From positions 258,634 to 322,633 of the IMG/VR virus record IMGVR_UViG_3300031576_000001: a stretch of DNA of 64,000 bases. One strand, written 5' to 3'. Each line of letters begins with the position of its first letter. Within the stretch, counting starts at the first letter, position 1. The notes below the pieces were generated by a model, which worked only from the letters and a program-made list of their open reading frames with translations, was not told the DNA's origin and made no database searches. This document shows, one piece after another, positions 1 to 57,522 of this stretch. The position numbers were made by a program, and so were the translations under genes.

Positions 1-13
1 GATCAGGGCGGAT

Positions 14-805: not shown

Positions 806-844
806 GAGGGAGGGGCGGCAATCAATACCCAAGGCACAAGCACC

Positions 845-1231
845 ATGATAAAAACCGGTAGCCCCCTCTTCAACGCTGTAACTCAAAGGCTCTCCCCCGA
901 GGTTTGGGCTCGCAAGGTCGCCTGGCTCACTCAGGAAGAGATCACAGAGAGAGGACGCCTGGAGGGCGAAAGTTTGCTCGCCGCGGGGCGCCTCTTGCAA
1001 AGGGAAGAACGCCCCCTGGGCGAGTCCTCTTGGCACTTGAGCGGTACGCCCACCAACGTCACGGACCTTTGTGAGCGATTGGTTCAGTGGACCTGTCAAC
1101 CCCTCCCCAGTTTGCGTACAGAATACGCTGTCAAGTCTGCCAGCGCCGAGGACTTGACGTTAGCTCGTGCTGAGAAGCTGGTTCCCTCTCCCCTCTCAGG
1201 GGGTAACCAGCTTGCGCGGGCCTTGACCTGA
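845..1231 (+). CDS. hypothetical protein
   Basis: ATG ORF after the helicase; in-frame TTA at 1160 (proposed end 1162) removes the overlap with the convergent gene. Confidence 0.6.
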   Translation: MIKTGSPLFNAVTQRLSPEVWARKVAWLTQEEITERGRLEGESLLAAGRLLQREERPLGESSWHLSGTPTNVTDLCERLVQWTCQPLPSLRTEYAVKSASAEDLTLARAEKLVPSPLSGGNQLARALT

Positions 1232-2409
1232 GCATCTAGCCCACTGTCCGCGATGAACTTCAAACAAGCAAGGTGCGCGGCATGGTCTGCCCAGTCGCTT
1301 GACTGTGGACCGATGGGGTAGGAGGGTTGCCAGTGCATCCTTAGCCGGTGCAAGCTCTCCGTGAAAGCAGCGAACTCTCCCATGACCCGGATGTGACGCT
1401 TCTTGAACCTGCCCTTGTCATGTAGAAGCGAGAGGTGCTTCCCCACGCCCACCTGAAACGGCAGCGTGCGGACAAGGATCTCGCCTACCGCTGTGTTGCC
1501 CGACGTGTAGCTGAAGATGTCAAAGAAATCCAAAGGCTGGGGGCGCTCTTTGAGCATCTTGAAGTGCTGCTCGACCTCGGCGGCGTAGGTTTGGGCTTGC
1601 TCGTCCCAGTCTTTCAGGTGCGAGAGGTTCACCATGATACGCCACACGTCCTCACGGATCATGGCAGACTGAACCTGTAGCTTGCGTGACTTCCCTACGG
1701 GCGGTGTCGCGGCAGTGTCCTCTACGGTCGAGAAGACGCGCAGAACAGGGTGACCGTGGTTCTCTGCTTCGCCCGTGATGACACAGGGGTACCGCAGAGA
1801 GACCACCGGGGCGACACAAGCCAACTGTCGAGCAACCTCAGCTTGGTCATAAGAGACCCACCGGACCCGGCACTCGTTGGCGCCCGCGCGAGTCACGGCA
1901 AAGCCTGCCGCCTCACCCCCATTGTAAAGGGGGTACGTAGAGAGGAGTTTTTCGAGGCGGCGCCTTGTGACGACGCCGGGGGGGAGCTTATCTTTAGCGC
2001 CGGTAAGCTCCTGGGTGCGCTGGGCTAGCCTCTTGGCGGCACGCTCAAAGCCAGCGTCATGGACCCTTACGCGCCCTTCCCAGAGGGTTTCCATGAACTG
2101 CTCAAAGGTCCAGGTCTTCTTGGCGGGGGGGTCGTGGTACTTGTTTGGACCCCACCCCCTCTCAACCAGATCCAGCTTGAAGCCTTCAAGCCAGGTCTCG
2201 CAGACAATGGCATCCCCGGGGTGAATGTCCTCGATCCTCCCGTAACCGTTGTACTTTGCCTGGATAGGGGGGGTGCGAGGGAACCACAGCCCGTTAGCCT
2301 CACGGGGGCGTGCCCTGTAGGGGTTCTGGGTGAGAAGCAACACCATCACAGGGTCGCCTCCGTGGATGGGGAGCCCGCTGGCGGCGCACGGCATGGAGAA
2401 AGATCCCAT
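1096..2409 (-). CDS. hypothetical phage protein
   Basis: Long ORF; start MGSFSMPC (2409) lies 7 nt after a GGTGTAnnnT motif; in-frame TTA at 1204-1206. Confidence 0.75.
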   Translation of the reverse strand: MGSFSMPCAASGLPIHGGDPVMVLLLTQNPYRARPREANGLWFPRTPPIQAKYNGYGRIEDIHPGDAIVCETWLEGFKLDLVERGWGPNKYHDPPAKKTWTFEQFMETLWEGRVRVHDAGFERAAKRLAQRTQELTGAKDKLPPGVVTRRRLEKLLSTYPLYNGGEAAGFAVTRAGANECRVRWVSYDQAEVARQLACVAPVVSLRYPCVITGEAENHGHPVLRVFSTVEDTAATPPVGKSRKLQVQSAMIREDVWRIMVNLSHLKDWDEQAQTYAAEVEQHFKMLKERPQPLDFFDIFSYTSGNTAVGEILVRTLPFQVGVGKHLSLLHDKGRFKKRHIRVMGEFAAFTESLHRLRMHWQPSYPIGPQSSDWADHAAHLACLKFIADSGLDAQVKARASWLPPERGEGTSFSARANVKSSALADLTAYSVRKLGRG

Positions 2410-2435
2410 GGACGCAACAGTACACCAAGATTCTC

Positions 2436-2470
2436 GTGAACTCCAGAACCAGCACAACGTAAGAGGGGTT
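2436..2470 (+). promoter_or_regulatory. GTGAA-N17-CGTA promoter-like motif
   Basis: One of five copies with an identical 17-nt spacer; 9 nt before ATG 2471. Confidence 0.65.
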
Positions 2471-2680
2471 ATGAACACCACGATCTACGTTACGCACTAC
2501 CACAAGGAGTGCAGGGTGACTCGCAACAAGTGGTCCATCGACCCATACCGCTGGGTCGATGGACCACTTTGACCCCTACCAGACCGGGGGCACTTCGTGT
2601 TCACCCGCACGGCGGACGGGCGCCTGTGGTGCATGGTCACGGACAAGGAAACCCGGGACGCCGTGCTGGCGACCCGCTGA
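2471..2680 (+). pseudogene. disrupted paralogue of the 2760-2972 gene
   Basis: TRNKWS and FVFTRTADGRLW match TQTKWS and FTFTCTADGTVW; in-frame TGA at 2570; FDPYQTGG (cf. VNPYASGG) lies in a shifted frame. Confidence 0.65.
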
Positions 2681-2685
2681 GAGGG

Positions 2686-2720
2686 TTCCCTAGCCAGGGG
2701 GGCACACGCTGGCTAGGGAA
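2686..2720. terminator. hairpin, probable terminator
   Basis: Perfect 12-bp inverted repeat TTCCCTAGCCAG/CTGGCTAGGGAA between two genes. Confidence 0.55.
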
Positions 2721-2724
2721 AGTC

Positions 2725-2759
2725 GTGAATCCTGAGAGAGCCTCAGCGTAAGAGAGGTT
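2725..2759 (+). promoter_or_regulatory. GTGAA-N17-CGTA promoter-like motif
   Basis: GTGAATCCTGAG...AGCGTAAGAG directly before ATG 2760. Confidence 0.7.
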
Positions 2760-2972
2760 ATGAAACCCATCGAAACCACCTACGCCGGCAAGAAGTACCT
2801 CATCACCCAGACCAAGTGGTCTACGGACATTATGGTCTGGGTGGAGTCTGAGGTGAACCCCTACGCCTCGGGGGGCTCTTTCACGTTCACCTGTACCGCG
2901 GACGGTACGGTGTGGGTCAAGGTCTCCGACCCGGCGCTGTACGAAAAGGTCATGGCCCGCGCCGGCTTCTGA
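2760..2972 (+). CDS. small hypothetical protein
   Basis: Upstream promoter motif, GC3-rich codons, adjacent paralogue. Confidence 0.75.
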   Translation: MKPIETTYAGKKYLITQTKWSTDIMVWVESEVNPYASGGSFTFTCTADGTVWVKVSDPALYEKVMARAGF

Positions 2973-3733
2973 CGGACTAAGACCGGCTGACGGAGAACAC
3001 GGAGCACGCCTTGGTGTGAGATGAGCTTGGCTAGCTTAGGGTCTCTCAGCACGTCGTGAAGGTGCGTAGCCACGCCGTTGACCTCGCACCACAGGGAGAC
3101 GAGGATTACGGTCTGACTGTAATCTGTATGCTTGCGCCCGTGGCGGAAGCCTCTTCCTTGGATGAGCCGTAGGTACTGCTTGGTTTTCGGGTCTTTGACC
3201 AGGGAGGCAATCGCCTCACCCTTCATTCCGAGGTAGCTCAGCCCCTCAAAGTGCCAGCCGTAGTTTACAGCGTCCTCCGCAGAGCCTACTTTTAGCTCGT
3301 TGTCGATGAGCCAGTGCTTGCCCACGGTAGACACGATAGTGCCCAGAGGGAGGTCAGCGGGCAGCAAGGCGTCAATCTTGCGACTGTGCTCGATCATGGC
3401 CTCCGTGGACGAGGTTATGGCTCTGTTTCTGGGGGGGAGAGTGTAGCCCCGGTTGAGCCAGATAAGGTCTGCCAGCTTGGCGGTAAGCAGGGAGCACTCT
3501 AGCGCGTCGGCTATCCTCTGTTGCAGAGAGGCGCTGGCGTTGACCCGCACCCCGTTGACTTTCAGGGCGTCAGCGTAGACCCACACGGTAAGCTCGGTCC
3601 CTGTGTCCTTGTCTTGCACGTAGAGGGGGGCTAGGGTGGCTTCATACCTCCCGGCTCGTACCTCAGCCAGGATGTAATCCTCTCGTGCTTGCAGTGTACT
3701 TGGAAAACCCATGAGCCCAACAGAGTCAGTCAT
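2861..3733 (-). CDS. conserved hypothetical protein, possible cell-wall hydrolase
   Basis: LLTAKLADLIW, GKHW, NYGWH, LIQ...H...DYSQ resemble an uncharacterised family I recall fused to peptidoglycan-binding domains; in-frame TTA at 2978, 5 nt past the convergent gene's stop. Confidence 0.55.
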   Translation of the reverse strand: MTDSVGLMGFPSTLQAREDYILAEVRAGRYEATLAPLYVQDKDTGTELTVWVYADALKVNGVRVNASASLQQRIADALECSLLTAKLADLIWLNRGYTLPPRNRAITSSTEAMIEHSRKIDALLPADLPLGTIVSTVGKHWLIDNELKVGSAEDAVNYGWHFEGLSYLGMKGEAIASLVKDPKTKQYLRLIQGRGFRHGRKHTDYSQTVILVSLWCEVNGVATHLHDVLRDPKLAKLISHQGVLRVLRQPVLVRQKPARAMTFSYSAGSETLTHTVPSAVQVNVKEPPEA

Positions 3734-4184
3734 AAAGCACCCTACCAATAGGCAGGCAAAAGAGCTTCTTAGCGGGGCTACCGTCACCACGGTCAGCGGC
3801 ACGAACCCCCTCACCTTGACGCTATCGAGGGGAGGTCTGAGTTACAGTGTCACGGTAGGCAACCTGACCAACCTGAGCAAGCTGAAGAGTACGCCGGACC
3901 CAGAGAGGGTTTTTTATGCCTCTCTGGGCTTCTTGTTGACCAGTAGCAGCCTACACGCGGTTCTGACCGAGCCTGAGAGCGTGTTGGTCTTCGTGGTGTC
4001 TGCGACGCACTTTGGGTGGAAAGACAAGGCCAGCGGGCGAGCCTGGCTTATCAAGGCAGAAAGGTGTGGTCAGTGGTGGAAGCTGACCAGAACAGCCCCG
4101 GGGCGCAAGGTACTAAAGCAGGCGCTACGCCAGGGGGAGGGGTGGGAAGCCTTCTTGAAGGCGCACCAGCCTGAAAAGGTGTAA
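3711..4184 (+). CDS. hypothetical protein (start uncertain)
   Basis: ORF track; ends at the GGTGTA motif of the next gene. Confidence 0.5.
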   Translation: MSPTESVIKHPTNRQAKELLSGATVTTVSGTNPLTLTLSRGGLSYSVTVGNLTNLSKLKSTPDPERVFYASLGFLLTSSSLHAVLTEPESVLVFVVSATHFGWKDKASGRAWLIKAERCGQWWKLTRTAPGRKVLKQALRQGEGWEAFLKAHQPEKV

Positions 4185-4193
4185 GCTCTCTTG

Positions 4194-4728: not shown

Positions 4729-4734
4729 AACCCT

Positions 4735-15327: not shown

Positions 15328-16730
15328 GCCCCCCTCTCGCAGCACACCTGACACAAATTTACCACACCTGGGACGACTTCAAAGCTAATCTCACCTCTTG
15401 CACGGGGGTACTACGGCGTCACGAAACCAGTATTCTTATCACGGCTTACTTCTATGATACCCCCGAGGTGCATATCTGCCAACTCTGGAAGGGGGACGTG
15501 CCAGATGGGGTGGACGCAGGTGCAAATACGTCAGCCCTAGCGGACTTTGAGGCTAACTTTCGCACACTGGCAGAGCAACGCAGAGCCCTTGACCTCACCG
15601 ACGACCTAGGTCGCAAGGCCGTCGTAGCCGAGCCCAGGACGGGAACCGAGGTCATCTACTCCTCTGGGAATTTCTGCGATCCCTCGACGTGGTTTGGTGG
15701 CAGCGTGCGAGTCACGGAGCAAAGCCTCACGGACAGTGGTAACGGTCTCACCTGGACCTCGCCAGACACACAATGGGTTGACCTTATCTCGGGTCGAGTA
15801 CAGGACGACGACGGGCTTGTTGAGGAGCAACAGTTTACCACGCCAGGAAACCCTCACGGTTATCAGGTCTCCGTATGGGTGGATGACGTTCTCGTCACCA
15901 TGCGCGAGCCGTTTGAAGCCTCGGGGGGGGATTACGAGGTTCTGTGGACGGAAGGACAGGTGCGATTCTTCACGTCGCAAGCTGGCAAGGCTGTAAAAGC
16001 CTCCTACTCCAAGGCGAACGAGAGTACGTTTTACCTACGCCCCCTCCGGGGTAAAGCCTTGAGCATTGAAGCGGCAGAGTCCGACTTCAGCGAGGACTGC
16101 ATCCCCACTGACACCATCATTTACGCAGTGTTTGGTTGGGTAGAAGCCTTTGCCCCTCAGTATGCTTACACTCCTGGTGTGGGTACAGCGTCATTCACTA
16201 ATGGTAATACCGCAGTCACCGGAGCCGGAACCAGCTTTCTCTCAGAGGTTACTCCTGGTAACTACGTGCGCCTAGAGGCTCACGGACCAGAGAACTACAT
16301 GGTTGTAGCCTCTGTGGAAAGCAACACTGCGTTGACGCTGGCAGCGCCCTACACAGGGGCTACAGGCACCGGGAGCATGGCTATCTCTATGCTCCCTACG
16401 GGGGTGTACCCCTACGGGACCAAGATTGAGCTAAAGCGCGGGCAGTACAAGCGGATCACTCAGATATTTAATGAGGCTATCGGGTCGTACCCCCAGGTCA
16501 CGATCCTGGCTTCCACAGCGGCAGACCGCGCTAACCTGAGCGTTGCGGAGTTCCGCCGCACTTGCCGGGGGCTACGTAGCCCTATACAGAGCACTCCGTT
16601 CAGGTACGCCACCACGCGAGACTTGCGGGCGGATATGGGCATGGAGCTAAGGGTCTGGCTAAAGCACCACCGAGCGTTTGACGGTTTCTTCTCCTCCATG
16701 ACGCTCTATTGCACGTCCAGGTCGCTGTGA
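15324..16730 (+). CDS. putative virion structural protein
   Basis: GTASFTNGNTAVTGAGTSF tail-fibre-like segment; ATGA/GTGA coupling. Confidence 0.7.
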   Translation: MSPPLAAHLTQIYHTWDDFKANLTSCTGVLRRHETSILITAYFYDTPEVHICQLWKGDVPDGVDAGANTSALADFEANFRTLAEQRRALDLTDDLGRKAVVAEPRTGTEVIYSSGNFCDPSTWFGGSVRVTEQSLTDSGNGLTWTSPDTQWVDLISGRVQDDDGLVEEQQFTTPGNPHGYQVSVWVDDVLVTMREPFEASGGDYEVLWTEGQVRFFTSQAGKAVKASYSKANESTFYLRPLRGKALSIEAAESDFSEDCIPTDTIIYAVFGWVEAFAPQYAYTPGVGTASFTNGNTAVTGAGTSFLSEVTPGNYVRLEAHGPENYMVVASVESNTALTLAAPYTGATGTGSMAISMLPTGVYPYGTKIELKRGQYKRITQIFNEAIGSYPQVTILASTAADRANLSVAEFRRTCRGLRSPIQSTPFRYATTRDLRADMGMELRVWLKHHRAFDGFFSSMTLYCTSRSL

Positions 16731-17629
16731 AGGCTCTGGTTCTCTCCGGTGGTGGTAGTAAAGGCTCCTGGCAAGCGGGCGTATTGACTCGTCTCCTTGG
16801 CGAAGAGGGTCAGTACTACGAGGTAATCTGTGGTGTCAGCGTGGGAGCCCTCAACGGGGCCTTCCTGGCTCAGTACCCTCTGGGTAGAGAACGTGAGGCC
16901 AGCTTCGATCTTGGTAATCTCTGGCGTGCTGTAGAAACAAGCAAAATATACAAGCGCTGGTTCCCCTTTGGGCGACTACACGCCCTCTGGCGCGGTTCTG
17001 CTTACAACAGTGAACCCTTGGCGGATTGGGTGTCCACTGCACTCGACACCAAGAGAATCCAAACGTCCGGGCGTAAGCTCAGGGTGGGTGCAGTTTCCTT
17101 GACAACAGGGGAGTACCGCCTCTTTGGTGAGGACTACCCAGAGCTAACCCAAGCTGTTCTTGCGTCAGCTAGTTTTCCAGCCGCACTTTGCCCTGTATCG
17201 ATGGAGGGTGAGCTTTGGTCCGATGGTGGGATCAAAGAGATTACCCCCCTGCAAGGAGCCATCGCTCTTGGTGCTTCGCACGTTGACGTGGTTTTGTGCT
17301 CCCCCAAGAGTACCACGACCCCCTTCCCTGCGGACGCTAACGCAATCAGCGTAGCTATGCGAACGATTGACCTCATGAGCGATGAGATCCTCAACGACGA
17401 CCTAGCTAAGACCGCCATGGTCAATCAGCTTGTCGAGGCGGGGGCGTGCAACGACAAGCGCCTGGTTACCATACGGGTTTTCCGCCCTGAGAAGAACCTG
17501 ATCGAGTCGAGCCTGGACTTCTCTAACGACAAGATGCGTGCCTTGCTTGACCAAGGGTACGCGGCAGCTTCTCGGTGGGAGAGCCTGTTAGCCCCGAGGT
17601 TAGTCCCCCTCTTAGGTGAGCCTGGCTAA
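16727..17629 (+). CDS. patatin-like phospholipase
   Basis: GGGSKG, GVSVG (GxSxG), ASASFP and DGG motifs; first in-frame TTA at 17588. Confidence 0.92.
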   Translation: MKALVLSGGGSKGSWQAGVLTRLLGEEGQYYEVICGVSVGALNGAFLAQYPLGREREASFDLGNLWRAVETSKIYKRWFPFGRLHALWRGSAYNSEPLADWVSTALDTKRIQTSGRKLRVGAVSLTTGEYRLFGEDYPELTQAVLASASFPAALCPVSMEGELWSDGGIKEITPLQGAIALGASHVDVVLCSPKSTTTPFPADANAISVAMRTIDLMSDEILNDDLAKTAMVNQLVEAGACNDKRLVTIRVFRPEKNLIESSLDFSNDKMRALLDQGYAAASRWESLLAPRLVPLLGEPG

Positions 17630-18487
17630 GAGGTCGTGCTTTAGCCACGCCTGGGGGTTGTCATCGCGTCTACGCCAGAGGCAGCTAGCCCGCTGGGTGG
17701 GGTTGACTGCACCCAAAGCCCCCTCTGCGCAACTCCACCAAGAGGTAAGGCTGACGCCCTCCTCGGCGTGAAGGAGATACCCCGTGATGCGCCACCCCGA
17801 GGCGGTACGGTAGCTGTAGGTCTCGGGGTACTTCCCACGCAGGACCATGGGTAGCCCGTCCAGGTTCTTGCCCCTGTCCAAGAGCCATTCTCCCTTGCCG
17901 GCGATGTTGACCCTGCTGCCCAAGAAGTGCCTGGACTTCTCCTGACCTCGGGGACCGTCAAAGAACATCCCGTCCAGCGCTACGAGGTACGTACCCATAG
18001 GCACCCCGTAGCGCTGGCTCTGCCCGTCGTAGACGTGAACCACCGGACAGGGTACCGGCCAGGGTGCCCGTGGACTCGTTTCCAGCTTGCCCCCCAAGTA
18101 GTCCCCCAGGTAGTCCTCCAAGAGGCTGTGCTTGTCGAAGAACCCCTCTTCTTCGAGCTTGTCCAGCTTGTGCAACACTTCCTCTTGCTCGGGGCTAAGC
18201 AAGCTGTCGCTGGTGTGCGCCAGAGCTTCTGAGATGGGCACGGGCACCTTGACAGGGGAGGGCTCCGAAGGCTTGGGTTTGCGAGGCGCTGGGTCGAGAA
18301 GAGGTGCCGCGCCGCACAGAACCTCCATGACCAGGGCACGGGTCATCTTCCCACGGATCACGCGCCCAGCTTTGATGTCATCCTCCACCCGGGCGATAAG
18401 CGCCAGCTTCGTCTCGGGCGTCGTGAGGTCGCGAACGTGTTCAAGGAGCAGCCGGTAAGCCCCGCTGCGTGAGTCGAGCGTTGTCAT
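17612..18487 (-). CDS. hypothetical protein
   Basis: GGTGTA motif at 18501; in-frame TTA at 17627. Confidence 0.7.
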   Translation of the reverse strand: MTTLDSRSGAYRLLLEHVRDLTTPETKLALIARVEDDIKAGRVIRGKMTRALVMEVLCGAAPLLDPAPRKPKPSEPSPVKVPVPISEALAHTSDSLLSPEQEEVLHKLDKLEEEGFFDKHSLLEDYLGDYLGGKLETSPRAPWPVPCPVVHVYDGQSQRYGVPMGTYLVALDGMFFDGPRGQEKSRHFLGSRVNIAGKGEWLLDRGKNLDGLPMVLRGKYPETYSYRTASGWRITGYLLHAEEGVSLTSWWSCAEGALGAVNPTQRASCLWRRRDDNPQAWLKHDLLARLT

Positions 18488-29662: not shown

Positions 29663-30151
29663 ATGTTCACACCCAATCCTCAACAAGCTGCATTTTTCTC
29701 TGACCCTGACTGTCACGCTAGCCTTCGGTGGTTGCATAACGAAGAGGTGAGTAACCGCGGGACAGGACGCACCACGGCGTTGGCGCACCTCTACTTCCGG
29801 CAAGCCTTTCTCGCTCCCGGCGTCTCGGTCAAGGTCTATGACCACCACGACACAGAGAGGCACCACAAGGGCCTAGCAAGGTTTATCCTTGATTTCGTCA
29901 AGGGTAGAGACTTCGCGGGCTACTGGATAGCCGTTGACCTACACGCGCACACCCTCGCCGCACTAGTGTCCAGCGTGACGAAACCAATGACTGCACCTAG
30001 AGAGGCGACGACTTACATACACACGACTCCAGCGACGTACAGCTCCACAGGTGTAGTTACCGTAGGAGCAACGATAAGCTACGGGGCTACCCACACGTTT
30101 ACAACCATCCCCGTGAGCACTAACTTCGTACCGTTCACAATTACGCATTTA
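29663..30151 (+). CDS. hypothetical protein (ends at TTA; fused to the radical SAM ORF under table 11)
   Basis: RGTGRTT P-loop-like motif; the only in-frame TTA of the 562-aa ORF is at 30149, followed by a GGTGTA motif and a new ATG. Confidence 0.6.
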
Positions 30152-30181
30152 CGCTCGGTGTGGCGGTGTACCCTAGCAGTC

Positions 30182-32070: not shown

Positions 32071-32087
32071 CGGTGTATGATGGGCTC

Positions 32088-33695
32088 ATGCCATCGTGGT
32101 TTAGCGAGAACACGTCAGACAAGCAGCACTACAATCCAGGGCAAGTTTACTCCAACTTGCAGACCCTCTTTGAGAAGGACTGCCTGCGAAACGGTCGCAC
32201 CTTCTCCGCTTGGGATCTGTCGGGTATACTCAGGGACGGAAGCTCCTTCGCTGCGTGGGAGAAGAAAATAAAGTCCCTGGGTTTTGGCCGAGCTAGCTTT
32301 TACCGCTCGGACTGGGCTGAACTCACACCGGAACCGGAGAGCGAAACCGTGGTCACCGTGGTCTACCTCGGGGACCACGGGGTGGTGCAATACCAGGGTC
32401 CGCTGACCGGCACCCTTCGAGCCGTCAACGTGATCGCTAACGTGAGCGCTACCGTGAGCCAAGACAAGACGCGCGAAGAGATGCTCACGTTTCTCAGGGC
32501 TAACCTGCAAGAGCGACCTTCCAAAGAGACGGGGGCGCCCTTCCTGGCGACGACCGACTCACGCGGGGGGTTGACCTTCGAGCAAAACCTGACCAGCGTG
32601 GGCTCTCCCTGGGTACCCACTAACTACAGCAAAGAGGTTCGGGCAGCTTACAGCGCCATGCTACCTGCCTTCGCCTCTAAGAACCCCTCGGGCAAGCTGG
32701 TCATCCTCAACGGAGCGCCTGGCACTGGCAAGTCCTTCCTGCTTCAGGCATTGCTGTACGACACCCGGGATCGGTTTTGCCATATCATCATGCCGCCCTA
32801 CATGATGCACAACATCACCGGACCCCAAACCATGTCCGCCCTGCTTCAGCACCGGAACGAAAACACGCGCAAGCGTACCGTCTTCTTCCTAGAGGACGCC
32901 GAGGACGCTCTCTTGGTACGTCAGGGCGATAACCACAGCGCGGTGAGCAACATCCTCAACCTGAGCGACGGTATGATGGGGAAGATCCTCGACATACGGA
33001 TCGTTGCCACCACCAACCGCAAGAAGGTTGAGCTAGACCCCGCCCTAATCCGTGATGAGCGCCTCTTGGCTCATATCTCCGTGGACCCCCTCTCCCCAGA
33101 GGAAGCCCGGGAAGCCTTTGATCACGTCTACCCAGAGAAGGCGGGTCAGTACACCCCGCACTACCCAACCAGCCTGGCTACCGTCTACAAGACAGCCAAG
33201 TCAATGGGGTGGACAGCACCAGAGCCCGCCGATAAGCCCGCTTCTCGCGGTGTGGTGACCCAGCGCCAGATCGACCGAGACGAGGCTAAGGTCCGGGGAC
33301 AATCCAAGGTAGGCGTTAGGGCACAACCGCGCAAACCCCACCTGGCAAGCGCCCCCAAGTTACCCCAGGCTAGGCGTCTCTTCGACAACGCAGCGGACCA
33401 CGCCCCACTCTATGCACCGGAGAAGGTAAAGGGCGATAACCGCCTCAGTGGGGTAGGAAGGCCAGAGGGTTCCCTCGTCGTCGGTCGCCCACCAGTTTGT
33501 GGTGTCGCTGCGTATGTCCGCCAGGATCTCCTCAAGCGTCTGCGGACTCTCGCTACTTACCCAGTGAAAGATGCCCCCCGTCTCTCGCTCAAACCGTTTG
33601 TGCTCAGCCGGGTCTGCAACGCGCAAGAAGGCGCCAGCAAGGACACGTTGAAATCGGGCACGCACAACGGGCGTCATCGGGTATCCCCTGGGTAG
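32088..33695 (+). CDS. AAA+ ATPase
   Basis: Walker A GAPGTGKS, Walker B FFLEDAE, TTN and LDPALIR; in-frame TTA at 33360 (proposed end 33362). Confidence 0.9.
   Translation: MPSWFSENTSDKQHYNPGQVYSNLQTLFEKDCLRNGRTFSAWDLSGILRDGSSFAAWEKKIKSLGFGRASFYRSDWAELTPEPESETVVTVVYLGDHGVVQYQGPLTGTLRAVNVIANVSATVSQDKTREEMLTFLRANLQERPSKETGAPFLATTDSRGGLTFEQNLTSVGSPWVPTNYSKEVRAAYSAMLPAFASKNPSGKLVILNGAPGTGKSFLLQALLYDTRDRFCHIIMPPYMMHNITGPQTMSALLQHRNENTRKRTVFFLEDAEDALLVRQGDNHSAVSNILNLSDGMMGKILDIRIVATTNRKKVELDPALIRDERLLAHISVDPLSPEEAREAFDHVYPEKAGQYTPHYPTSLATVYKTAKSMGWTAPEPADKPASRGVVTQRQIDRDEAKVRGQSKVGVRAQPRKPHLASAPKLPQARRLFDNAADHAPLYAPEKVKGDNRLSGVGRPEGSLVVGRPPVCGVAAYVRQDLLKRLRTLATYPVKDAPRLSLKPFVLSRVCNAQEGASKDTLKSGTHNGRHRVSPG
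33360..33677 (-). CDS. hypothetical protein
   Basis: ATGA-coupled to 33674-33895; its TAA pairs with the AAA gene's TTA. Confidence 0.65.
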   Translation of the reverse strand: MTPVVRARFQRVLAGAFLRVADPAEHKRFERETGGIFHWVSSESPQTLEEILADIRSDTTNWWATDDEGTLWPSYPTEAVIALYLLRCIEWGVVRCVVEETPSLG

Positions 33696-46952: not shown

Positions 46953-47310
46953 CTTTGCGCTTGTGGGTGGGGCAGTTTGGGTGATAGTGCCCCACCTGTC
47001 CGCAGCTACGGCACTCTTTCTTGCGGGCAGAGCCACCAGCTAGCAACGTGTTGACAGCTTCTTCGCTCCACAGGGAAGTCACCTTACGCCTAGAGTCAGC
47101 GTTGAACAACTTGAGGTAGGCAACGACCAGCTTAACCGTGTCAAGCCAGTAAGGGTCTTCTGCCCTCAAAGCCCGCACAGCGTCGTCAATCTCGCCCAGG
47201 GGGAGCGTCGTCCAGGCTTCGGTGGCTATAGGCTGGTTGTAACGACTGAGGAGGAGGATCGCGGTAAGCCGCTCAGAGAGGGTGGGAGGGGTGGTACTCG
47301 TGTTGGGCAT
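46852..47310 (-). CDS. protein with a C-terminal CCHC zinc knuckle
   Basis: CRSCGQVGHYHPNC. Confidence 0.65.
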   Translation of the reverse strand: MPNTSTTPPTLSERLTAILLLSRYNQPIATEAWTTLPLGEIDDAVRALRAEDPYWLDTVKLVVAYLKLFNADSRRKVTSLWSEEAVNTLLAGGSARKKECRSCGQVGHYHPNCPTHKRKATAPQSTPPGPNAHSVPQTPPDPTPPEKSQPGQ

Positions 47311-47600
47311 GGGGCTAGGCGTAGGTGTCTAAGCTCCTTGACACGGCTGTCAAAGACCAGAGCCGTCAACTGGTTACCCAGGTCGGGCTCGCAGAAGTTA
47401 GCGGTCGCCTTGGGGAGCAGCGCGTAGAGCGCCCCTTCGTTGTCCACCTAGAGGAAGACCAGCGTGTTGCCACCCTCGTACCAAAGGCGAGCTTTCTCCG
47501 GGTTACGCATGACAAACTCTACCAGGGCGTGCATCCCCTGGACAGCCTGAGCGCCAGGGGAGAGGTCGCTACGTGTCACGATGTAAAGTTTCTGTGTCAT
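47226..47600 (-). pseudogene. PTH2-like peptidyl-tRNA hydrolase with an in-frame TAG
   Basis: MTQKLYIVTRSDLSPGAQAVQGMHA...NTLVFL*VDNE...FCEPDLGNQLTA; TAG at 47448-47450. Confidence 0.75.
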
Positions 47601-49030: not shown

Positions 49031-49290
49031 GGTAACAATCTCTCGTGTTTGGGTGCCTGGCGGAAGGGGTACACCGAGAGAGCCACGGGGAGGACCACGC
49101 TTGCGGGGGAGCTAGAAGAAGGCTTTCATGGTGAGCGTAGGGTAACCAGGGTTAGAGGTTGGTACAAGGGGTGCGCCCTGCGGGAGTTGAACCCGCGCAA
49201 AAGAACTTTAGAGGCTCTGTACTCTACCTTTGAGTTAAAGGCGCGTTGTGTGGGCTTCTGCTCGATCTCACGAGGTAGCCCGTTGTGAAG

Positions 49291-49754: not shown

Positions 49755-50696
49755 TCAAAAGGCGTTATACACCGGCAAGGGTAAGCTGTCGGCAAGCGTA
49801 AGCAGTTGGTGGTTCAAGGCGATCAAGGCGTCGCGGTCTTCTAGAGGCTCCAAGAGGGTGCTGTCTACGCCCTCCAAGCCGTAGAACGCCCCGAGGAGAG
49901 CCCCGACCATGCTAGCAATGGTGTCAGTATCACCCCCTCTACGGATGGCTAGCTCGATACCCTCCTTAAAGGAGGTAGCTACCGCGGCCAGCGCAAAGAC
50001 AACCGCCACGTCTGCTGTGACCCCTCTAGGTGGGAGAGCCTTGAGGTACCCCGCCAGGGAGTGCCTGGGCAAGGGCTGAGGGAAGTTCTCAAAAATGTCG
50101 TGTAGTTTCCCGGCTGGCAGCATGGTAGCCACCTTCTTAGCCAGGTAGGTAGGTGTGGTTACCTGTAGGGCTAGTAGACCCACCCCAAGAGCGATAGCCA
50201 TGCTGCCGTGCCTTGCCTCGGGGGACTGGTGGGTCAACGAAGCGTCCACGTCGGCGTATCGCGCGGCTAGGTCCAGGTCATGCCGGAAAGCCAGCCCGAT
50301 GGGCGATACCCTCATGGCGGTACCGTTGCCCTGTGAGCCAGCGACCCCACAGGTTGTCGGGCTCTTGGTGCGTAGGTACTTCAAGATAGCCTCACGCACG
50401 GTGTTCCCCATCCCCCTGCACGAACCGGACTGAAACCACTTGTAGTAGCTCTCCATGACGGCGCTGGGGTTGAACGTCTTCTCTTGGACGAGGGACTTGG
50501 CAAGCGCCACGGTCATCTGGGTGTCGTCCGTGACCTGACCTGGCTCAATCATGAGCCAATTGTTGCGCGTGGGTAGGTAGGAGTGCCCATCCCAGTCAAG
50601 CAAGAGGGGGCTGAGGCTCATCCTCCCCTCGAAAGGTGCGCCCAGTGCGTCCCCTACGGCAACCCCGACGAGCGGGGCAGGCGTGCGGTCTTTCAC
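49755..50696 (-). CDS. ADP-ribosylglycohydrolase (DraG/ARH family)
   Basis: GDALGAPFE, TDDTQM, GNGTAMR, SLTH and GGDTDT; in-frame TTA at 49782. Confidence 0.93.
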   Translation of the reverse strand: MKDRTPAPLVGVAVGDALGAPFEGRMSLSPLLLDWDGHSYLPTRNNWLMIEPGQVTDDTQMTVALAKSLVQEKTFNPSAVMESYYKWFQSGSCRGMGNTVREAILKYLRTKSPTTCGVAGSQGNGTAMRVSPIGLAFRHDLDLAARYADVDASLTHQSPEARHGSMAIALGVGLLALQVTTPTYLAKKVATMLPAGKLHDIFENFPQPLPRHSLAGYLKALPPRGVTADVAVVFALAAVATSFKEGIELAIRRGGDTDTIASMVGALLGAFYGLEGVDSTLLEPLEDRDALIALNHQLLTLADSLPLPVYNAF

Positions 50697-52885: not shown

Positions 52886-55800
52886 TCAGGAGTCAGCTAA
52901 GGCTAAGGTGAGGAGAACGGCGTCACCGATCTGGATGAGCACCTTGACCAAGCCGGCACCACCTCGGGTAACTATGCCCACCTTGAGGACATAGTTTGTG
53001 GCGGTCGTGGGCGCCGTGAGTGTCCAGAAGCCAGCGGAGACACCCGTTCCGGTCGCTGAGAGGAACGCGCGTTGACCCACGTTAGCGTCCGTAGGTACGC
53101 TGTCCCACACTGCGTCAGGCACAGAGACTTCACCGGCAACGATGACCGAGATGCTAGCGTTTGCGGCGGCGATGGCGGCAGCAACACCGATTACGTTGGC
53201 GTCAAGTTCGCTGGTTGTGTTGGCGTCAGCGTGGAAGATACGGTTGTCGTTAGCTCCGTCATCCTTGACACAGACCAGCTTGAAAGCCCCCAGTGCGTAG
53301 GTGCCGTTGACGGTCCCCGTCATGGTGACGGCGTTGGCACCTACCCCGCTGTGAGTGTGCAGAGCGTCCGCGTTGGACCCATTGGTCAGCGTGGTAAGGT
53401 TGGCACCGGTAACGGAAGAGGAAGTAGTGCTACCATTGATGGTGAGCTGTACCCCGGAAGCCAGCGCAAACGAGGTTGCAGAAGCTACCGTGGCAACCGC
53501 TGCCCCTGCAAACTGCTGAATGACGCCTGCGGTACCATTGAGGGTAAGCGCGCCAGCCGAAGTGCTCCACGTCGAAGCTGCTGCGGCAGTGATGGTCAAC
53601 GCGCCTGCCGTGGTGCTCCACGTAGAGGCTGCCGCTCCGGTAAGGGTCAAACCACCGGCACTTGTCGTGAAACTAGACGCTGCGTTAGCCGAAAGGTTGA
53701 CGGAGCCTGTTAGTTGACCAAGGTTGCCTGTGATCGTGGTGGTGACACCCGAAGCGCCCATGTTGATGGCGCTGGTGTTCGTAGCGCCAATGTTGACTGC
53801 ACCGTCTGTACCGCCTGTGCTATCACCGCCGCGAATCGTGACGGAACCGCCAGCACCCGCGCCCGTAACTGCACCACCAGCGACGGTTACCGAACCACCA
53901 GCAACAGTCGTAGCAGCACCCGCTGTAATGCTGACGTTACCGCCGACACCATTGGTGCCACCCGCTGTAGTACCACCAGTACCAGCCGTTAGAGTGATGC
54001 TACCACCGGCACCACCTGTGCCTGTAGTGGTATCGTTACCACCGGCACCAGCAATGCCAGAGAAACCACCACCGGCACCCGCGATACCACCACCTACAGT
54101 AGCACCACCAACGGCTGCCGTCAGCTCGATGCCACCACCGGCACCACCTGTACCAGCCCCAGCGGTAGCACCGCCAGCACCAGCGTTTATGACTGAGGCG
54201 CCACCAAGACCACCGATACCTGTAGAACCAGCAGCACCACCGGCACCGAGGTTGGCCAGGATGCCAGCACCAGCACCACCGGTACCAATCCCTGTCGCGG
54301 CACCACCTGCTCCAAGGTTGAACTGAACCTTGCCAGGCGAACCACCTGTAGCTGTAGCCGTAGTTCCACCGTTGCCGGTTTCTACTCTGAACCCACCAGT
54401 ATTGCCACCGTTAACAGCTCCAGCGTTGTTAGAGCCTGTGCCCGTTACAAGGTAGATGTACCCCGTAACCGCTAGCGCACCTGTTCCTGCGGTACCTGTG
54501 GTTAGCGTGATGTTGCCGCTCTCAGCGGAGGGTCCATTGCCCGCACCCGTGGTCAGATTGATGTTGCCACTGAAGCCACCAGTGCCTGCGCCAATCGTTG
54601 TACCACCAGCACCAGAAGTCAGGCTAATAGCACCACCGGTGCCAGCTACTCCGGTAGTATTATCATCACCACCAGCACCGGCGGTTGCACTGATAGCACC
54701 ACCATTGCCACCAGTTCCACCGCCGGTGGTAACATCGCCACCATTAGACCCTTGGAGCGTAAAAGCTCCACCAGCTCCAGCTACACCTGTAGCCGTAGCC
54801 CCACCGGCACCCGTTGTCCAGCTAATGGCACCACCGATACCGCCGGCATCGGCCGCAGCACCAGCGCCACCGTTACCAGCAAGCCCAGTGATATCACCAC
54901 CATCACCACCACCGGTAGCACCACCTGTTAGGGTAGCACCACCACCACCAGATGTGATGCTTATAGTGCCACCGTCACCCGCATCAGCAACATCGGATGA
55001 GCCACCCAAACCGGTTGATAGAACAAATCCACCACCGGCACCACCATCACCTGTGCCCGAGTTGGCGCCACCGTCACCACAAAATACGGAGGTGATACCA
55101 CCGGAGCCTGCATTAGTAGCTCCAGTGCTCGCTGAACCGGTACCTGTGGAAGTAACTATCTGTCCACCACCAGCATCGCCATCACCAATGGCAGAACCGG
55201 AGGTAATAGTAACCTCACCACCAGATCCGAAAGTGCTGGCCGAAGAAGTGTTGCCCCCTGTAAGGTTGATCGAACCACCACTAAAGTTCCCAGTAGACGT
55301 AGTATTCGCACCGACGAGGCTAACGTCACCAGCATCGTCACCAATTGCTGAACCACTCGTTAGAGTAATGGCGCCGCCAGCGCCAGTAGCTCCACCGGCA
55401 CCTGCGCTAGCGCTAATAGCACCACCATTACCAGTGCCAATGCCAGCGCCAGCCGTTGCAGACACCGCGCCACCAACAGCGTTACCCGCGGTAGCTGCAC
55501 CCGCTGTGAGCGTCAGGGCACCGCCAGCGTTGTTTGCACCGCCACCCGCACCCGAAGAGAGTGCCAGGATACCACCCACGCCCGCGGTAGAAGCCTCTAC
55601 GGAGAGGGCTCGCGTGCTCGTGGTCTGGTTGAAGGTTATGTCACTGTCTACCTGAGAGCTGAAGACGGTAAGGTCAACCGCCGTGTTGTCTCCGAGGGTG
55701 ACGTTTCCGTTGAGGGTGGTAGCCCCGTCAACATCCAGCGTGCTGTTGAGAGTTGTGGCTTGGTCTACATCCAGAGAACCATCCACGTTGGTCGGTATAC

Positions 55801-56476
55801 CGGATGCACCCAACGTGACGCTGGCCGTGTTGGTAGCTCCGATGACCACCGCACCGTTTGCAGCACCACCATTACCGTTACCCGCACGGAGGGTAAGCGC
55901 GCCGCCTGTCCCTGTAGAGGAGGCACCACCAGCGACCGTTACCGCGCCGCCCGTACCGGCGCCAGGAGCCGCACCTGCCGTTACAGTGAGAGCACCACCC
56001 GCAGCCGTCGTGGTGCCTGCGGCACTTGAAATCGCCAGCGCAAGACCCGTTGTTGCTGCCGCGGTAGGCGCGACAATCGTGACGTTGTGCCCGCCCGCAG
56101 GAGCGTCACCGTAAAAGGTAATGTCAGGGTAGGAGCCCGCCGAGTCGCCCACGTAAGCCCGGAAGGCTACCGTGTCCGTACCAGAACCATCACCGAAGAC
56201 CACGGTGGAGTTGAAGACCGTGGCACCTACAACGGTCTCCGTACCGTCAATCTGCAAGTTACCGAGGACGGTGGTGAGAACACCGCTCTTGCCGATAGAC
56301 ATAGAGGTGATGGCAGAGCCCGCACCGCCTACCACGATGGAGGTAGCGGTGCTGCCTCCTAGCGTAAGGGCACCACCTGTGCGACGGTCAAGTCCGATCC
56401 CTGTTTCCAGGGTGTCCGCAGAGGTAATCTGCTTGTGTACACCAGCGTCAAGTACGAGTGCGGGGAAGTTAGACAT
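52886..56476 (-). CDS. glycine-rich long fibre protein
   Basis: Many GG.i.l..G.GG repeats; C-terminal domain shared with 57818; in-frame TTAs only at 52904 and 52898. Confidence 0.85.
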   Translation of the reverse strand: MSNFPALVLDAGVHKQITSADTLETGIGLDRRTGGALTLGGSTATSIVVGGAGSAITSMSIGKSGVLTTVLGNLQIDGTETVVGATVFNSTVVFGDGSGTDTVAFRAYVGDSAGSYPDITFYGDAPAGGHNVTIVAPTAAATTGLALAISSAAGTTTAAGGALTVTAGAAPGAGTGGAVTVAGGASSTGTGGALTLRAGNGNGGAANGAVVIGATNTASVTLGASGIPTNVDGSLDVDQATTLNSTLDVDGATTLNGNVTLGDNTAVDLTVFSSQVDSDITFNQTTSTRALSVEASTAGVGGILALSSGAGGGANNAGGALTLTAGAATAGNAVGGAVSATAGAGIGTGNGGAISASAGAGGATGAGGAITLTSGSAIGDDAGDVSLVGANTTSTGNFSGGSINLTGGNTSSASTFGSGGEVTITSGSAIGDGDAGGGQIVTSTGTGSASTGATNAGSGGITSVFCGDGGANSGTGDGGAGGGFVLSTGLGGSSDVADAGDGGTISITSGGGGATLTGGATGGGDGGDITGLAGNGGAGAAADAGGIGGAISWTTGAGGATATGVAGAGGAFTLQGSNGGDVTTGGGTGGNGGAISATAGAGGDDNTTGVAGTGGAISLTSGAGGTTIGAGTGGFSGNINLTTGAGNGPSAESGNITLTTGTAGTGALAVTGYIYLVTGTGSNNAGAVNGGNTGGFRVETGNGGTTATATGGSPGKVQFNLGAGGAATGIGTGGAGAGILANLGAGGAAGSTGIGGLGGASVINAGAGGATAGAGTGGAGGGIELTAAVGGATVGGGIAGAGGGFSGIAGAGGNDTTTGTGGAGGSITLTAGTGGTTAGGTNGVGGNVSITAGAATTVAGGSVTVAGGAVTGAGAGGSVTIRGGDSTGGTDGAVNIGATNTSAINMGASGVTTTITGNLGQLTGSVNLSANAASSFTTSAGGLTLTGAAASTWSTTAGALTITAAAASTWSTSAGALTLNGTAGVIQQFAGAAVATVASATSFALASGVQLTINGSTTSSSVTGANLTTLTNGSNADALHTHSGVGANAVTMTGTVNGTYALGAFKLVCVKDDGANDNRIFHADANTTSELDANVIGVAAAIAAANASISVIVAGEVSVPDAVWDSVPTDANVGQRAFLSATGTGVSAGFWTLTAPTTATNYVLKVGIVTRGGAGLVKVLIQIGDAVLLTLALADS

Positions 56477-57522
56477 GGTTGCTCTTTAGTCTCTCTAAGG
56501 TTGGTCAGGATAAGTAGTAAGATTCCCAAGAATACAAGTTTGCCTGCGGACCCTGCTGAGCCCGCTGTAGCGGAGCCTCCACCTGGGGCACCACCGGCAC
56601 CCCCGTTAGCGGTAGGCGCAGTCCCAGAGAAAAAGCGGTAGAGGACAATGCAATAGCCTCCTCCCCCTCCCCCTCCTCCAGCACCGTACTTGTTGTCCAC
56701 GGCGTTACCCCCACCATTGCCTCCGGCAGAGCCGTCAGCGTTGATGGTGCCACTGTTGACAACATTGTAGGCTACAAGGACAAGGACGCCGCCACAGGCA
56801 CCACCCCCACCGCCAAAGGTTGCGTTCTGTTCTGCTGTAAAGGAGCCACCGTAGCCCCCACCACCGCCGCCACTACCGCCACAAAGCGCCGTGGGGGTTC
56901 CAGGGGGACCACTGGCCAGACTTTGAAAGGTCGCGTGAACTAGCTCTGTTAGGGAGTAGCCTGGTTGGTGAGTAGGGGCGGTAACATTTCCTGCCGAGCC
57001 TCCTACCCCAGACCCCGAACCCACGCCTGTCCCTCCCGCCCCGCCCTTACCTCCCACGGAGTTTACACTGGACGCGCCAGAACCCCCGTTCGCCCCGCTG
57101 TGCGAGCCGCCCACCCCGCCGGCAGCCGTAACACCCATGACGGTTCCACTGTTGGTGGTAGCGCCGCCTTGTGGGATATTTGAGGCTGTGGACGCTTGGG
57201 TGGAGTCCCCCTTGCCGGCTGGGGTTGCAATAGCCCCATCTGTCGTACCGCCGCGAGCGTCTACCGTACCCCCAGAGGCGACCGTGAGGGTATTCTTGAC
57301 AAACACCCGGTAGCCCGCGACAGACAACCTACCCGTAGAGGTCACGGTCAGGTTGTTGTAGTACATATCCCGCGCAAGGACGACCGTAACAATCACGGTC
57401 ACGTCACCATCGCTTCCGTCCCCGAAGTACGCCATGATAGCGTTGCGTATCACGAGGGTATCCGTGGACGGAATCACCGTGAGCGTACCATTAATCATGG
57501 CGAGGGGAGAACAGTCAGGCAC
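56359..57522 (-). CDS. glycine-rich fibre/structural protein
   Basis: FGDGSDGDVT...YYNNLTV and GGGGGG runs; in-frame TTA at 56518 (proposed end). Confidence 0.75.
   Translation of the reverse strand: MPDCSPLAMINGTLTVIPSTDTLVIRNAIMAYFGDGSDGDVTVIVTVVLARDMYYNNLTVTSTGRLSVAGYRVFVKNTLTVASGGTVDARGGTTDGAIATPAGKGDSTQASTASNIPQGGATTNSGTVMGVTAAGGVGGSHSGANGGSGASSVNSVGGKGGAGGTGVGSGSGVGGSAGNVTAPTHQPGYSLTELVHATFQSLASGPPGTPTALCGGSGGGGGGYGGSFTAEQNATFGGGGGACGGVLVLVAYNVVNSGTINADGSAGGNGGGNAVDNKYGAGGGGGGGGYCIVLYRFFSGTAPTANGGAGGAPGGGSATAGSAGSAGKLVFLGILLLILTNLRETKEQPCLTSPHSYLTLVYTSRLPLRTPWKQGSDLTVAQVVPLR

Follow-up and report, generated by a model that had tools for sequence, protein, structure and literature searches.

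The 64,000-nucleotide stretch of DNA analysed here (referred to as the window; positions 258,634 to 322,633 of the IMG/VR virus record IMGVR_UViG_3300031576_000001) belongs to a 322,633-bp huge phage genome (59% GC) from a cave metagenome. The window carries several convergent gene pairs, a patatin-like phospholipase gene, genes for an AAA ATPase, an ADP-ribosylglycohydrolase and a PTH2-like peptidyl-tRNA hydrolase, and a solitary tRNA with the anticodon CUA (Table 1). In Pfam and PHROG searches, the ORFs of the convergent pairs discussed below mostly belonged to unannotated families, and a tblastn search of a phage collection with the 317-aa ORF found nothing.

Table 1. Features of the window discussed in the text (window coordinates; table-11 end, end of the ORF under translation table 11)
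Position	Strand	Feature	Terminator	Table-11 end	Remarks
845..1162	+	Possible small gene (105 aa)	TTA 1160-1162	1231	Weak coding score (6 only)
1204..2409	-	Conserved huge-phage protein family (phrog_5960-like)	TTA 1204-1206	1096	
2760..2972	+	70-aa gene	TGA 2970-2972		Convergent partner of the next gene
2978..3814	-	Gene	TTA 2978-2980	2861	Table-11 ORF overlapped 2760-2972
16709..17590	+	Patatin-like phospholipase gene (PF01734, E 4e-32)	TTA 17588-17590	17629	
17627..18487	-	Convergent neighbour of the patatin gene	TTA 17627-17629	17612	
29663..30151	+	Gene	TTA		Fused under table 11 with the next same-frame gene 30158-31351 (Fe-S oxidoreductase-like); the two parts match separate ORFs of the relative
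32073..33362	+	AAA ATPase gene	TTA		111-codon table-11 tail overlapped convergent genes
47265..47600	-	PTH2-like peptidyl-tRNA hydrolase gene	TTA 47265-47267		One in-frame TAG (47448-47450, codon 51)
49170..49244	-	Solitary tRNA, anticodon CUA (amber-suppressor type)			Rfam 55.5 bits; 1.6 kb from the PTH2-like gene
49782..50696	-	ADP-ribosylglycohydrolase gene	TTA		
52904..56476	-	1190-aa gene	TTA		
56518..57522	-	Gene	TTA		phrog_13336 profile ends (335 of 339) at residue 334; TTA is codon 335; 53-codon table-11 tail unmatched

We first examined the convergent pairs, for which the original prediction had claimed that overlaps vanish when TTA is read as a stop codon. Under table 11, ORF 845-1231(+) and ORF 1096-2481/2409(-) overlap by 136 bp, whereas termination at the in-frame TTAs leaves a gap of 41 bp. 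Similarly, the in-frame TTA of ORF 2861-3814(-) lies 5 nt after the TGA of its convergent partner, and the patatin gene and its neighbour, which overlap by 18 bp under table 11, are separated when both end at TTA. All coordinates given in the original prediction were correct, and the observation was understated. However, the word 'vanish' is too strong as a genome-wide statement. Convergent overlaps above 10 bp fell from 18 to 10 among all gene calls and from 6 to 3 among well-scored genes, and the median gap moved from -4 to +18 bp. The overlaps caused by TTA thus disappear, but a few others remain, for example window 4735-5295(+)/5249-5803(-), where both genes end in TAG. These gene calls, like those used below, were obtained with our own simple self-trained ORF scorer and not with a validated gene finder.

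We next counted TTA in the reading frames of the whole genome, and found that it is the rarest in-frame triplet. In 63,111 interior codons, TTA occurs 13 times in frame against 573 and 404 times in the other two frames, whereas CTA and TTG occur in frame 965 and 1033 times, respectively, and about 660 in-frame TTAs would be expected from the CTA/CTG ratio. All 13 interior cases lie at a junction with the next same-frame gene, which follows as 'TTA nnn ATG' or as a Shine-Dalgarno sequence plus ATG; one example is ThyX followed by a CxxCxxCC protein. In table-11 ORFs, 84 of 121 in-frame TTAs (69%) lie in the last decile of the ORF (binomial P about 3e-41 against a 15% expectation), with a median of 13 codons before the canonical stop. 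The other 60 sense codons range from 7 to 15%, and TTA is the only outlier among the 61 codons. In our gene calls, TGA ends 142 genes, TTA 102, TAA 58 and TAG 47.

These distributions argue against an ordinary artefact, namely that TTA is simply rare in a GC-rich genome, that long spurious ORFs overlap by chance, or that the TTAs are sequencing or assembly errors or sites of RNA editing. It is true that TTA is rare in many GC-rich phages, and that several relatives have no in-frame TTA at all. However, TTA is common out of frame, GTA is also common in frame, and errors are not frame-specific; moreover, rarity cannot place 69% of the occurrences at gene ends or exactly at the C-termini of homologues. 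A re-assembly of the source run, which checks the assembly but is not independent or RNA evidence, gave identical sequence over window 1-6000, and two phages from other samples show the same pattern. We therefore consider this explanation already contradicted. A +1 frameshift into an overlapping TAG or TAA was also rejected, because only 52 of the 102 TTA stops are followed by G or A, and 34 are followed by C.

If TTA terminates translation, the coding signal should end there. Indeed, the score per codon changed from +0.136 before the TTA to -0.067 after it, GC2 from.46 to.57 and GC3 from.74 to.62 (P = 3.5e-9), whereas genes without TTA showed no such drop. Sequence downstream of TTA scored like sequence downstream of TAA, TGA or TAG. 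Sequence downstream of TAG was likewise non-coding except in the PTH2-like gene, and we accordingly rejected general TAG read-through as a code change.

The original prediction had proposed that conservation of the post-TTA tails in relatives would refute the recoding, and this test failed to refute it. Of 117 homologues of the 1096-2481(-) protein, 109 start at residue 25 (window 2409); their conserved core ends near residue 415 and their ends cluster at 419-431, while the TTA is codon 426 and residues 427-461 have no counterpart. The 2978-3814(-) protein aligns with its ortholog in the related phage up to one residue before the TTA, and the C-terminus of the patatin protein matches an ortholog that ends in TGA, with a C-terminal offset of 1. 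Furthermore, 58 of 59 homologues of the 829-aa vWA-like ORF end at residue 766, where TTA is codon 767, and 5 of 6 homologues of the 1248-aa ORF end at residues 1151-1152, where TTA is codon 1153 and one relative has TGA. We also compared 69 ortholog pairs with the related phage contig. Thirteen pairs were TTA/TTA, with a median C-terminal offset of 0; in 24 pairs TTA lay opposite TGA, TAA or TAG, with a median offset of 2; and the 32 canonical pairs had a median offset of 3. In one case an apparent similarity in the tail was explained by the next gene overlapping in another frame.

Interestingly, the phage encodes its own tmRNA (genome 30256-30633; Rfam 52.8 bits), whose tag frame reads ANDNVEAAPLALAA followed by TTA. 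The related TTA-stop phage has ANDNVEALSLAA-TTA, whereas two TTA-sense relatives have ANDN...AAA-TGA, and a bacterial tmRNA in the same bin as the related phage has ...FALAA-TAA. There are 39 tRNAs in the cluster plus the solitary tRNA-CUA, and cognate tRNAs exist for all 13 other A-ending sense codons. Leu-CAA, -UAG, -GAG and -CAG are present, but no Leu-UAA was found among these 40 tRNAs, although the record may be incomplete (CheckV rates it 68% complete). We infer that UUA is left without a decoder in this phage.

The PTH2-like gene is the only gene that continues through an in-frame TAG here, and its ortholog in the TTA-stop relative has an in-frame TTA instead. Each lies next to a solitary tRNA with the matching anticodon (CUA here, and UAA in the matching place in the relative), so that TTA is treated like a stop that needs a suppressor. 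UUA can therefore in principle be read in the related phage, and the stop may be leaky or regulated. It could accordingly be proposed that a phage tRNA reading UUA is made at some stage and produces C-terminally extended protein forms on purpose. We regard this as improbable, since no such tRNA was found in the 322 kb of this genome and the tails show no coding signature and no conservation in their own frame.

We further analyzed the possible agent of release. Profile searches for PF00472, PF03462, PF03464 and PF00009 on the phage, and for PF00472 on the bin of the relative, found nothing on phage contigs; no class-I release factor, eRF1-like protein or translational GTPase was found on the 322 kb or on the 332 kb of the relative. 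Short RF1-like genes were found in some TTA-sense relatives, but not in this genome. The absence of a release-factor gene and of tRNA-Leu(UAA) from the available phage DNA, together with the presence of a PTH2-like hydrolase and a tmRNA, could indicate that UUA is an unassigned ('hungry') codon at which ribosomes stall, and that the chain is freed by peptidyl-tRNA drop-off followed by the phage hydrolase, or by a rescue system; tmRNA tagging at rare codons under tRNA scarcity appears to occur in E. coli (Roche and Sauer 1999). However, the tmRNA tag frame itself ends in TTA, and rescue by tmRNA cannot be the way TTA is resolved on tmRNA. In addition, drop-off of long peptidyl-tRNAs is probably inefficient, yet about 29% of genes, including those of 1000-2500-aa proteins, end this way, and PTH2 is also present in a TTA-sense relative. 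This alternative thus seems unlikely. The releasing agent is unknown; our leading guess, inferred only, is a class-I release factor of the RF2 type whose second-base reading is relaxed, as proposed for the organelles that read UUA as stop (change of the Ser of the SPF motif), although the sequence does not tell whether such a factor belongs to the host, is encoded on phage DNA missing from the record, or is something new.

Another possibility is that the host bacterium itself reads UUA as stop and that the phage merely mirrors the code of its host. The TTA-terminated genes are spread evenly over the genome, presumed early regions included, and translation from the first minutes of infection would be simplest if the host already terminated at UUA. 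The host is unidentified, and the only link is the co-binning of the relative with a Lysinibacter MAG that also holds several other phage contigs. Contigs of this bin turned out to be partly of phage origin (the bin holds five tmRNA genes), and only two, C9 and C17, were kept as bacterial. The genuinely bacterial contigs carry rho, RF1 and RF2 and use TTA throughout genes (24 in 5,713 codons on C9); their RF1 has the canonical PAT motif, their RF2 the canonical SPF motif, and their tmRNA tag ends in TAA. A host-wide code therefore appears doubtful, although this judgement depends on a phage-host link that rests on binning alone. It is conceivable, though speculative, that a small clade of huge phages runs its own four-stop code inside a host that reads UUA as leucine. 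By removing UUA decoding and terminating at it, through a release activity of a new kind or a hijacked and altered RF2, the phage would truncate every host (and competing-phage) protein whose gene contains TTA, while its own TTA-free genes are untouched. Sense-to-stop recoding would then be a host-takeover weapon, and the PTH2-like gene with its in-frame stop and cognate suppressor tRNA would be part of the control circuit.

Taken together, and although protein-level evidence is lacking, these results indicate that in this phage and in at least two related phages TTA (UUA) is not a leucine codon but a signal at which protein synthesis ends, so that the genome uses four stop codons (we estimate a probability of about 0.9). 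About 65 other relatives do not share the trait. The first relatives, found through the SNF2 helicase and the vWA-like protein, use TTA as sense or are too GC-rich to tell, and none of 58 IMG/VR relatives of the most conserved protein showed an excess of TTA at gene ends. Several relatives of similar GC content already lack in-frame TTA without using it as a stop, which suggests codon capture as a likely route; relatives include forms that use TTA, forms that have lost it and forms that have recaptured it as a stop. In practice, standard gene callers (table 11) add false C-terminal tails to about 30% of the proteins, fuse neighbouring genes and create false overlaps, and the public protein records of this contig carry these errors. 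Code-inference tools that look only at amino-acid reassignment would miss this type of change.

Every alternative code described so far in phages and free-living bacteria turns a stop into a sense codon or swaps amino acids, and sense-to-stop changes were known only from organelles with a handful of genes, whereas this genome has about 350 genes and uses a former leucine codon as its second most frequent terminator. In the literature searched, which was not exhaustive, we found no report of UUA or TTA as a stop in phages or bacteria, and sense-to-stop recoding in a phage appears unreported. The closest precedents are the codes of Thraustochytrium/labyrinthulean mitochondria (NCBI table 23) and of peDinoflagellate plastids (UUA/UCA stop), in which the same codon is reassigned from Leu to stop and lies at gene ends where homologues have canonical stops, while the canonical stops stay in use (PMC12574857); they encode no cognate tRNA(UAA), and here none was found, but in a possibly incomplete record and with one present in the related phage. 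However, those are tiny, AT-rich organelle genomes whose nucleus-encoded RF2 carries a substitution of the SPF serine, whereas the present genome is a 59%-GC, more than 320-kb virus of a bacterium, for which no release factor has been identified and whose presumed host appears to use the standard code. In mitochondria of Marsupiomonadales and Pseudoscourfieldia (modified mtRF1a), a leucine codon has likewise changed from sense to stop in a bacterial-type translation system, but there both UUR codons are stops, whereas here TTG is a frequent sense codon (16.7 per 1000) and a phage tRNA-Leu(CAA) is present. CrAss-like, Lak and other phages with recoded stops (TAG to Gln, code 15; TGA to Trp, code 4) depart from the code of the host, as this phage appears to do, and likewise encode translation parts (many tRNAs, a suppressor-type tRNA, tmRNA), but the direction is opposite: in those phages a stop becomes sense and in-frame stops are scattered through late genes, whereas here a sense codon becomes a stop and TAG, TGA and TAA remain stops. 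Finally, TTA is absent from the reading frames of Streptomyces phages (PMC10732093), as it is here in a phage of a possibly actinobacterial host, and such codon disappearance fits a first step of codon capture. In those phages, in bldA-dependent UUA decoding and in the unassigned codons of Micrococcus luteus, however, TTA is just missing or is a regulated leucine codon, whereas here it has reappeared about 100 times per genome precisely as the terminator and also closes the tmRNA tag frame.

The window is the last 64 kb of a single 322,633-bp contig with 58.6% GC, which IMG/VR lists as a linear virus record rated 68% complete by CheckV. The source is JGI sample 3300031576, contig Ga0247727_10000022, from a cave metagenome. 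The genome is that of a huge phage, and it contains a cluster of 39 tRNA genes plus one solitary tRNA, a tmRNA, an SNF2 helicase, a DnaB-like helicase and ThyX, among others; its proteins are 45-60% identical to those of 200-530-kb phage contigs. One ORF combines a LAGLIDADG homing-endonuclease domain (residues 120-237) with an N6/N4 DNA methylase, and may represent an intein or an inserted endonuclease. The coordinates of the features discussed here are summarized in the table.

Features of the phage genome and of related phages, with the codons noted in them (L002 and L005 are stretches of this genome; C4 is a contig of the related assembly GCA_040400085.1; L031 is a TTA-sense relative)
Feature	Numbering	Coordinates	Strand	Codon noted	Other numbering
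Table-11 ORF, convergent with the next	window	845-1231	+	TTA at 1160-1162	
Table-11 ORF of the main gene	window	1096-2481	-	TTA at 1204-1206 (minus strand)	
ORF convergent with the next	window	2760-2972	+	TGA	
Table-11 ORF (2978-3814 when ended at TTA)	window	2861-3814	-	TTA at 2978-2980	
Convergent ORF	window	4735-5295	+	TAG	
Convergent ORF	window	5249-5803	-	TAG	
Patatin gene	window			TTA at 17588-17590	
Convergent partner of the patatin gene	window			TTA at 17627-17629	
PTH2-like peptidyl-tRNA hydrolase gene	window	47265-47600	-	in-frame TAG at codon 51	
Solitary tRNA, anticodon CUA	window	49170-49244	-		
Gene matching phrog_13336	window	56518-57522	-	TTA	
tmRNA	genome	30256-30633		TTA closing the tag frame	L002:11256-11633
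tRNA-Thr, anticodon UGU	genome	30730-30800			L002:11730-11800
LAGLIDADG/DNA methylase ORF	genome	83556-86387			L005:7556-10387
vWA-like table-11 ORF (829 aa)	genome	238194-240683	-	TTA at codon 767	
PTH2-like gene of the related phage	C4	123367-123690		in-frame TTA at codon 56	
Solitary tRNA of the related phage, anticodon UAA	C4	121826-121901			
Short RF1-like gene	L031	1438-2037	-		

The original prediction claimed that overlaps between convergent genes vanish when TTA is read as a stop, and every coordinate it gave was correct. The first pair of ORFs overlaps by 136 bp under table 11, and ending both at their in-frame TTAs leaves a 41-bp gap; in the second pair, the TTA lies five bases beyond the TGA of the opposing ORF. 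The observation was confirmed and its interpretation supported, with the single correction that a few convergent overlaps unrelated to TTA remain. For example, a 47-bp convergent overlap between two ORFs that both end in TAG persists under the four-stop reading.

We next called genes across the whole genome with a self-trained codon-score ORF picker, which gave 319 genes and 95,292 codons under table 11. TTA was the rarest in-frame triplet (1.3 per 1000), although CTA (15.7), GTA (16.4) and TTG (16.7) were common. In gene interiors (63,111 codons), TTA occurred 13 times in frame, compared with 573 and 404 times in the other two frames, whereas about 660 in-frame occurrences would be expected from the CTA/CTG ratio. 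Of the 121 in-frame TTAs in table-11 ORFs, 84 lay in the last decile (binomial P of about 3e-41), with a median distance to the canonical stop of 13 codons; for the other 60 sense codons, the last-decile share was 7-15% and the median distance was 130-220 codons. The few interior TTAs were all followed by the start of another gene in the same frame, either as 'TTA nnn ATG' or as TTA followed by a Shine-Dalgarno sequence and ATG. One example is ThyX (PHROG match to residues 3-290; TTA is codon 296), which is followed by a CxxCxxCC-domain protein. No TTA was left inside any gene. When TTA was added as a stop, the picker found 349 genes with tidy spacing, of which 142 ended in TGA, 102 in TTA, 58 in TAA and 47 in TAG, and TTA-terminated genes were found in every 20-kb bin except the last, partial one. 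The database proteins predicted from this contig under table 11 carry false C-terminal tails or fusions (for example, the records numbered here P0001, P0121 and P0271; one has 823 aa against a true 766-residue end).

To examine whether coding signal continues beyond the TTA, we analyzed 49 post-TTA tails of at least 8 codons. The mean codon score fell from +0.136 before the TTA to -0.067 after it, GC2 rose from.46 to.57 and GC3 fell from.74 to.62 (Wilcoxon test, P = 3.5e-9), whereas genes without TTA showed no change at their C-termini. Moreover, the frame downstream of TTA scored like the frames downstream of TAA, TGA and TAG. Interestingly, the base following a TTA stop was rarely A (3%, compared with 20-24% after TGA or TAA) and the next three bases were C-rich (40-44%), which may be a context requirement for termination at TTA. 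A +1 slip into TAG or TAA is excluded, because a third of the sites are followed by C.

We then compared the positions of the TTAs with the ends of homologous proteins. The vWA-like ORF matched phrog_2426 to the last profile position at residue 764, and in an alignment 58 of 59 database homologues ended at residue 766, with a conserved terminal isoleucine, immediately before the TTA; the 63-codon tail was unmatched. For a 1248-aa ORF, five homologues ended at residues 1151-1152, TTA is codon 1153, and the closest relative has TGA at that place. A sixth homologue seems to share the tail; however, it comes from a phage with the same trait, and the 'tail' there overlaps the conserved next gene in another frame. 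The phrog_13336 profile ended one residue before the TTA. For the main gene of the original prediction, 109 of 117 homologues started at residue 25 (window 2409, as given in the original prediction), the conserved core ended near residue 415 and the variable ends clustered at 419-431; TTA is codon 426, and residues 427-461 have no counterpart.

The same pattern was observed in related phages. In GenBank assembly GCA_040400085.1, labelled 'MAG: Lysinibacter sp. isolate EUL_204', two contigs, C1 (205 kb) and C4 (127 kb), are syntenic with this phage at about 47-72% amino-acid identity. In these contigs TTA occurred at 1.3-1.6 per 1000, 60% and 53% of occurrences lay in the last decile, and interior cases were located at gene junctions. 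A third contig, from run SRR29476925, had 7 in-frame TTAs against 55 and 44 off frame, and 5 of the 7 lay near ORF ends. Under the four-stop reading, we compared 69 ortholog pairs between this phage and C1. In 13 pairs TTA was present in both genomes (median C-terminal offset of 0), and in 11 of these the alignment reached within 5 residues of both ends; in 24 pairs TTA in one genome lay opposite TGA, TAA or TAG in the other (median offset of 2); and 32 pairs had only canonical stops (median offset of 3). TTA therefore interchanges with the canonical stops as synonymous stops do. These pairs include genes of the original prediction, since 2978-3814(-) has TTA here and TGA there, as does patatin, with an offset of 1. 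With respect to data quality, a second assembly of the source run was identical over window 1-6000, and the frame-specific patterns, together with their recurrence in phages from other samples, exclude sequencing error.

However, none of about 65 other relatives showed the trait. Some use TTA freely inside genes, and some of similar GC content have no in-frame TTA at all but no excess at gene ends either, which is what a codon-capture path would leave behind. In particular, several IMG/VR relatives (L080/L128, L081 and L082; GC 0.57-0.62) had no in-frame TTA in about 6,000 codons, and this may be the 'codon lost' stage that preceded its capture as a stop.

The translation apparatus of the phage provided independent support. 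Rfam detected a full-length tmRNA (52.8 bits) in the tRNA cluster, which aragorn did not report. From the conserved resume codon, its tag frame reads ANDNVEAAPLALAA and is followed by TTA, whereas the next canonical stop is 29 codons further on, inside the structured part of the RNA. The tmRNA of the TTA-stop relative (C4) reads ANDNVEALSLAA-TTA, two TTA-sense relatives read ANDNGTVITALKAAA-TGA and ANDNDVPAFAAAA-TGA, and the bacterial tmRNA of the bin ends in ...FALAA-TAA. In addition, the phage encodes a cognate tRNA for each of the 13 other A-ending sense codons, including Thr-UGU, which was missed by aragorn and found by Rfam. Leu-CAA, -UAG, -GAG and -CAG are present, and Leu-UAA is the only reader of an A-ending sense codon missing from the set found on this contig.

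A further indication came from a conserved PTH2-like peptidyl-tRNA hydrolase gene, which has one in-frame TAG inside the domain and is 47% identical to a relative's intact gene across that site. It lies 1.6 kb from the solitary tRNA with anticodon CUA. In the TTA-stop relative, the same gene has an in-frame TTA, five codons apart from the TAG site, and lies 1.5 kb from a solitary tRNA with anticodon UAA. The pairing of a stop inside the gene with a matching suppressor tRNA is kept while the codon differs, which treats TTA as a member of the stop set. This arrangement looks like a conserved module in which a gene is gated by its own suppressor tRNA.

On this sequence evidence, functional proteins and the tmRNA tag very probably end at TTA, although the agent that releases the chain was not identified. 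No RF-1, PCRF, eRF1 or EF-Tu-type domain was found on this contig, and no RF-1 domain was found on the relative's phage contigs C1 and C4. Some TTA-sense relatives (L031, L033 and L034) encode short RF1-like proteins (about 190-200 aa) that lack the N-terminal domain and have GGQ, and PPN or PPT in place of the PxT codon-reading motif; one copy (L035) has an internal stop. In organelles that read UUA as stop, a substitution of the SPF serine in RF2, or remodelling of mtRF1a, is held responsible (PMC12574857). An RF2-type factor with relaxed second-base reading is therefore our leading inference, although we consider it only about as likely as not. The main alternative is a stall at an unassigned codon followed by factor-independent release, which is weakened because the frame of tmRNA itself ends in TTA. 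We also considered the code of a possible host. The genuinely bacterial contigs of the Lysinibacter bin (C9 with rho and RF1; C17 with RF2 and tmRNA) use TTA throughout genes and have canonical PAT and SPF motifs. If such a bacterium is the host, the code is phage-specific; however, this link is weak, as it rests on binning only and the bin, which holds five tmRNA genes (contigs C4, C5, C10, C17 and C98) and at least two huge-phage contigs (C1 and C4), is a mixture of a bacterium and several large phages.

Phage recoding described so far goes from stop to sense, and actinophages are known to avoid TTA. In our literature searches, which were not exhaustive, we found no report of a sense-to-stop code in a phage or bacterium. 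UUA as stop, in contrast, is NCBI table 23 (labyrinthulean mitochondria), and was recently also shown for peDinoflagellate plastids and, together with UUG, for some green-algal mitochondria (PMC12574857). We therefore class the code described here as a known reassignment in a wholly new setting.
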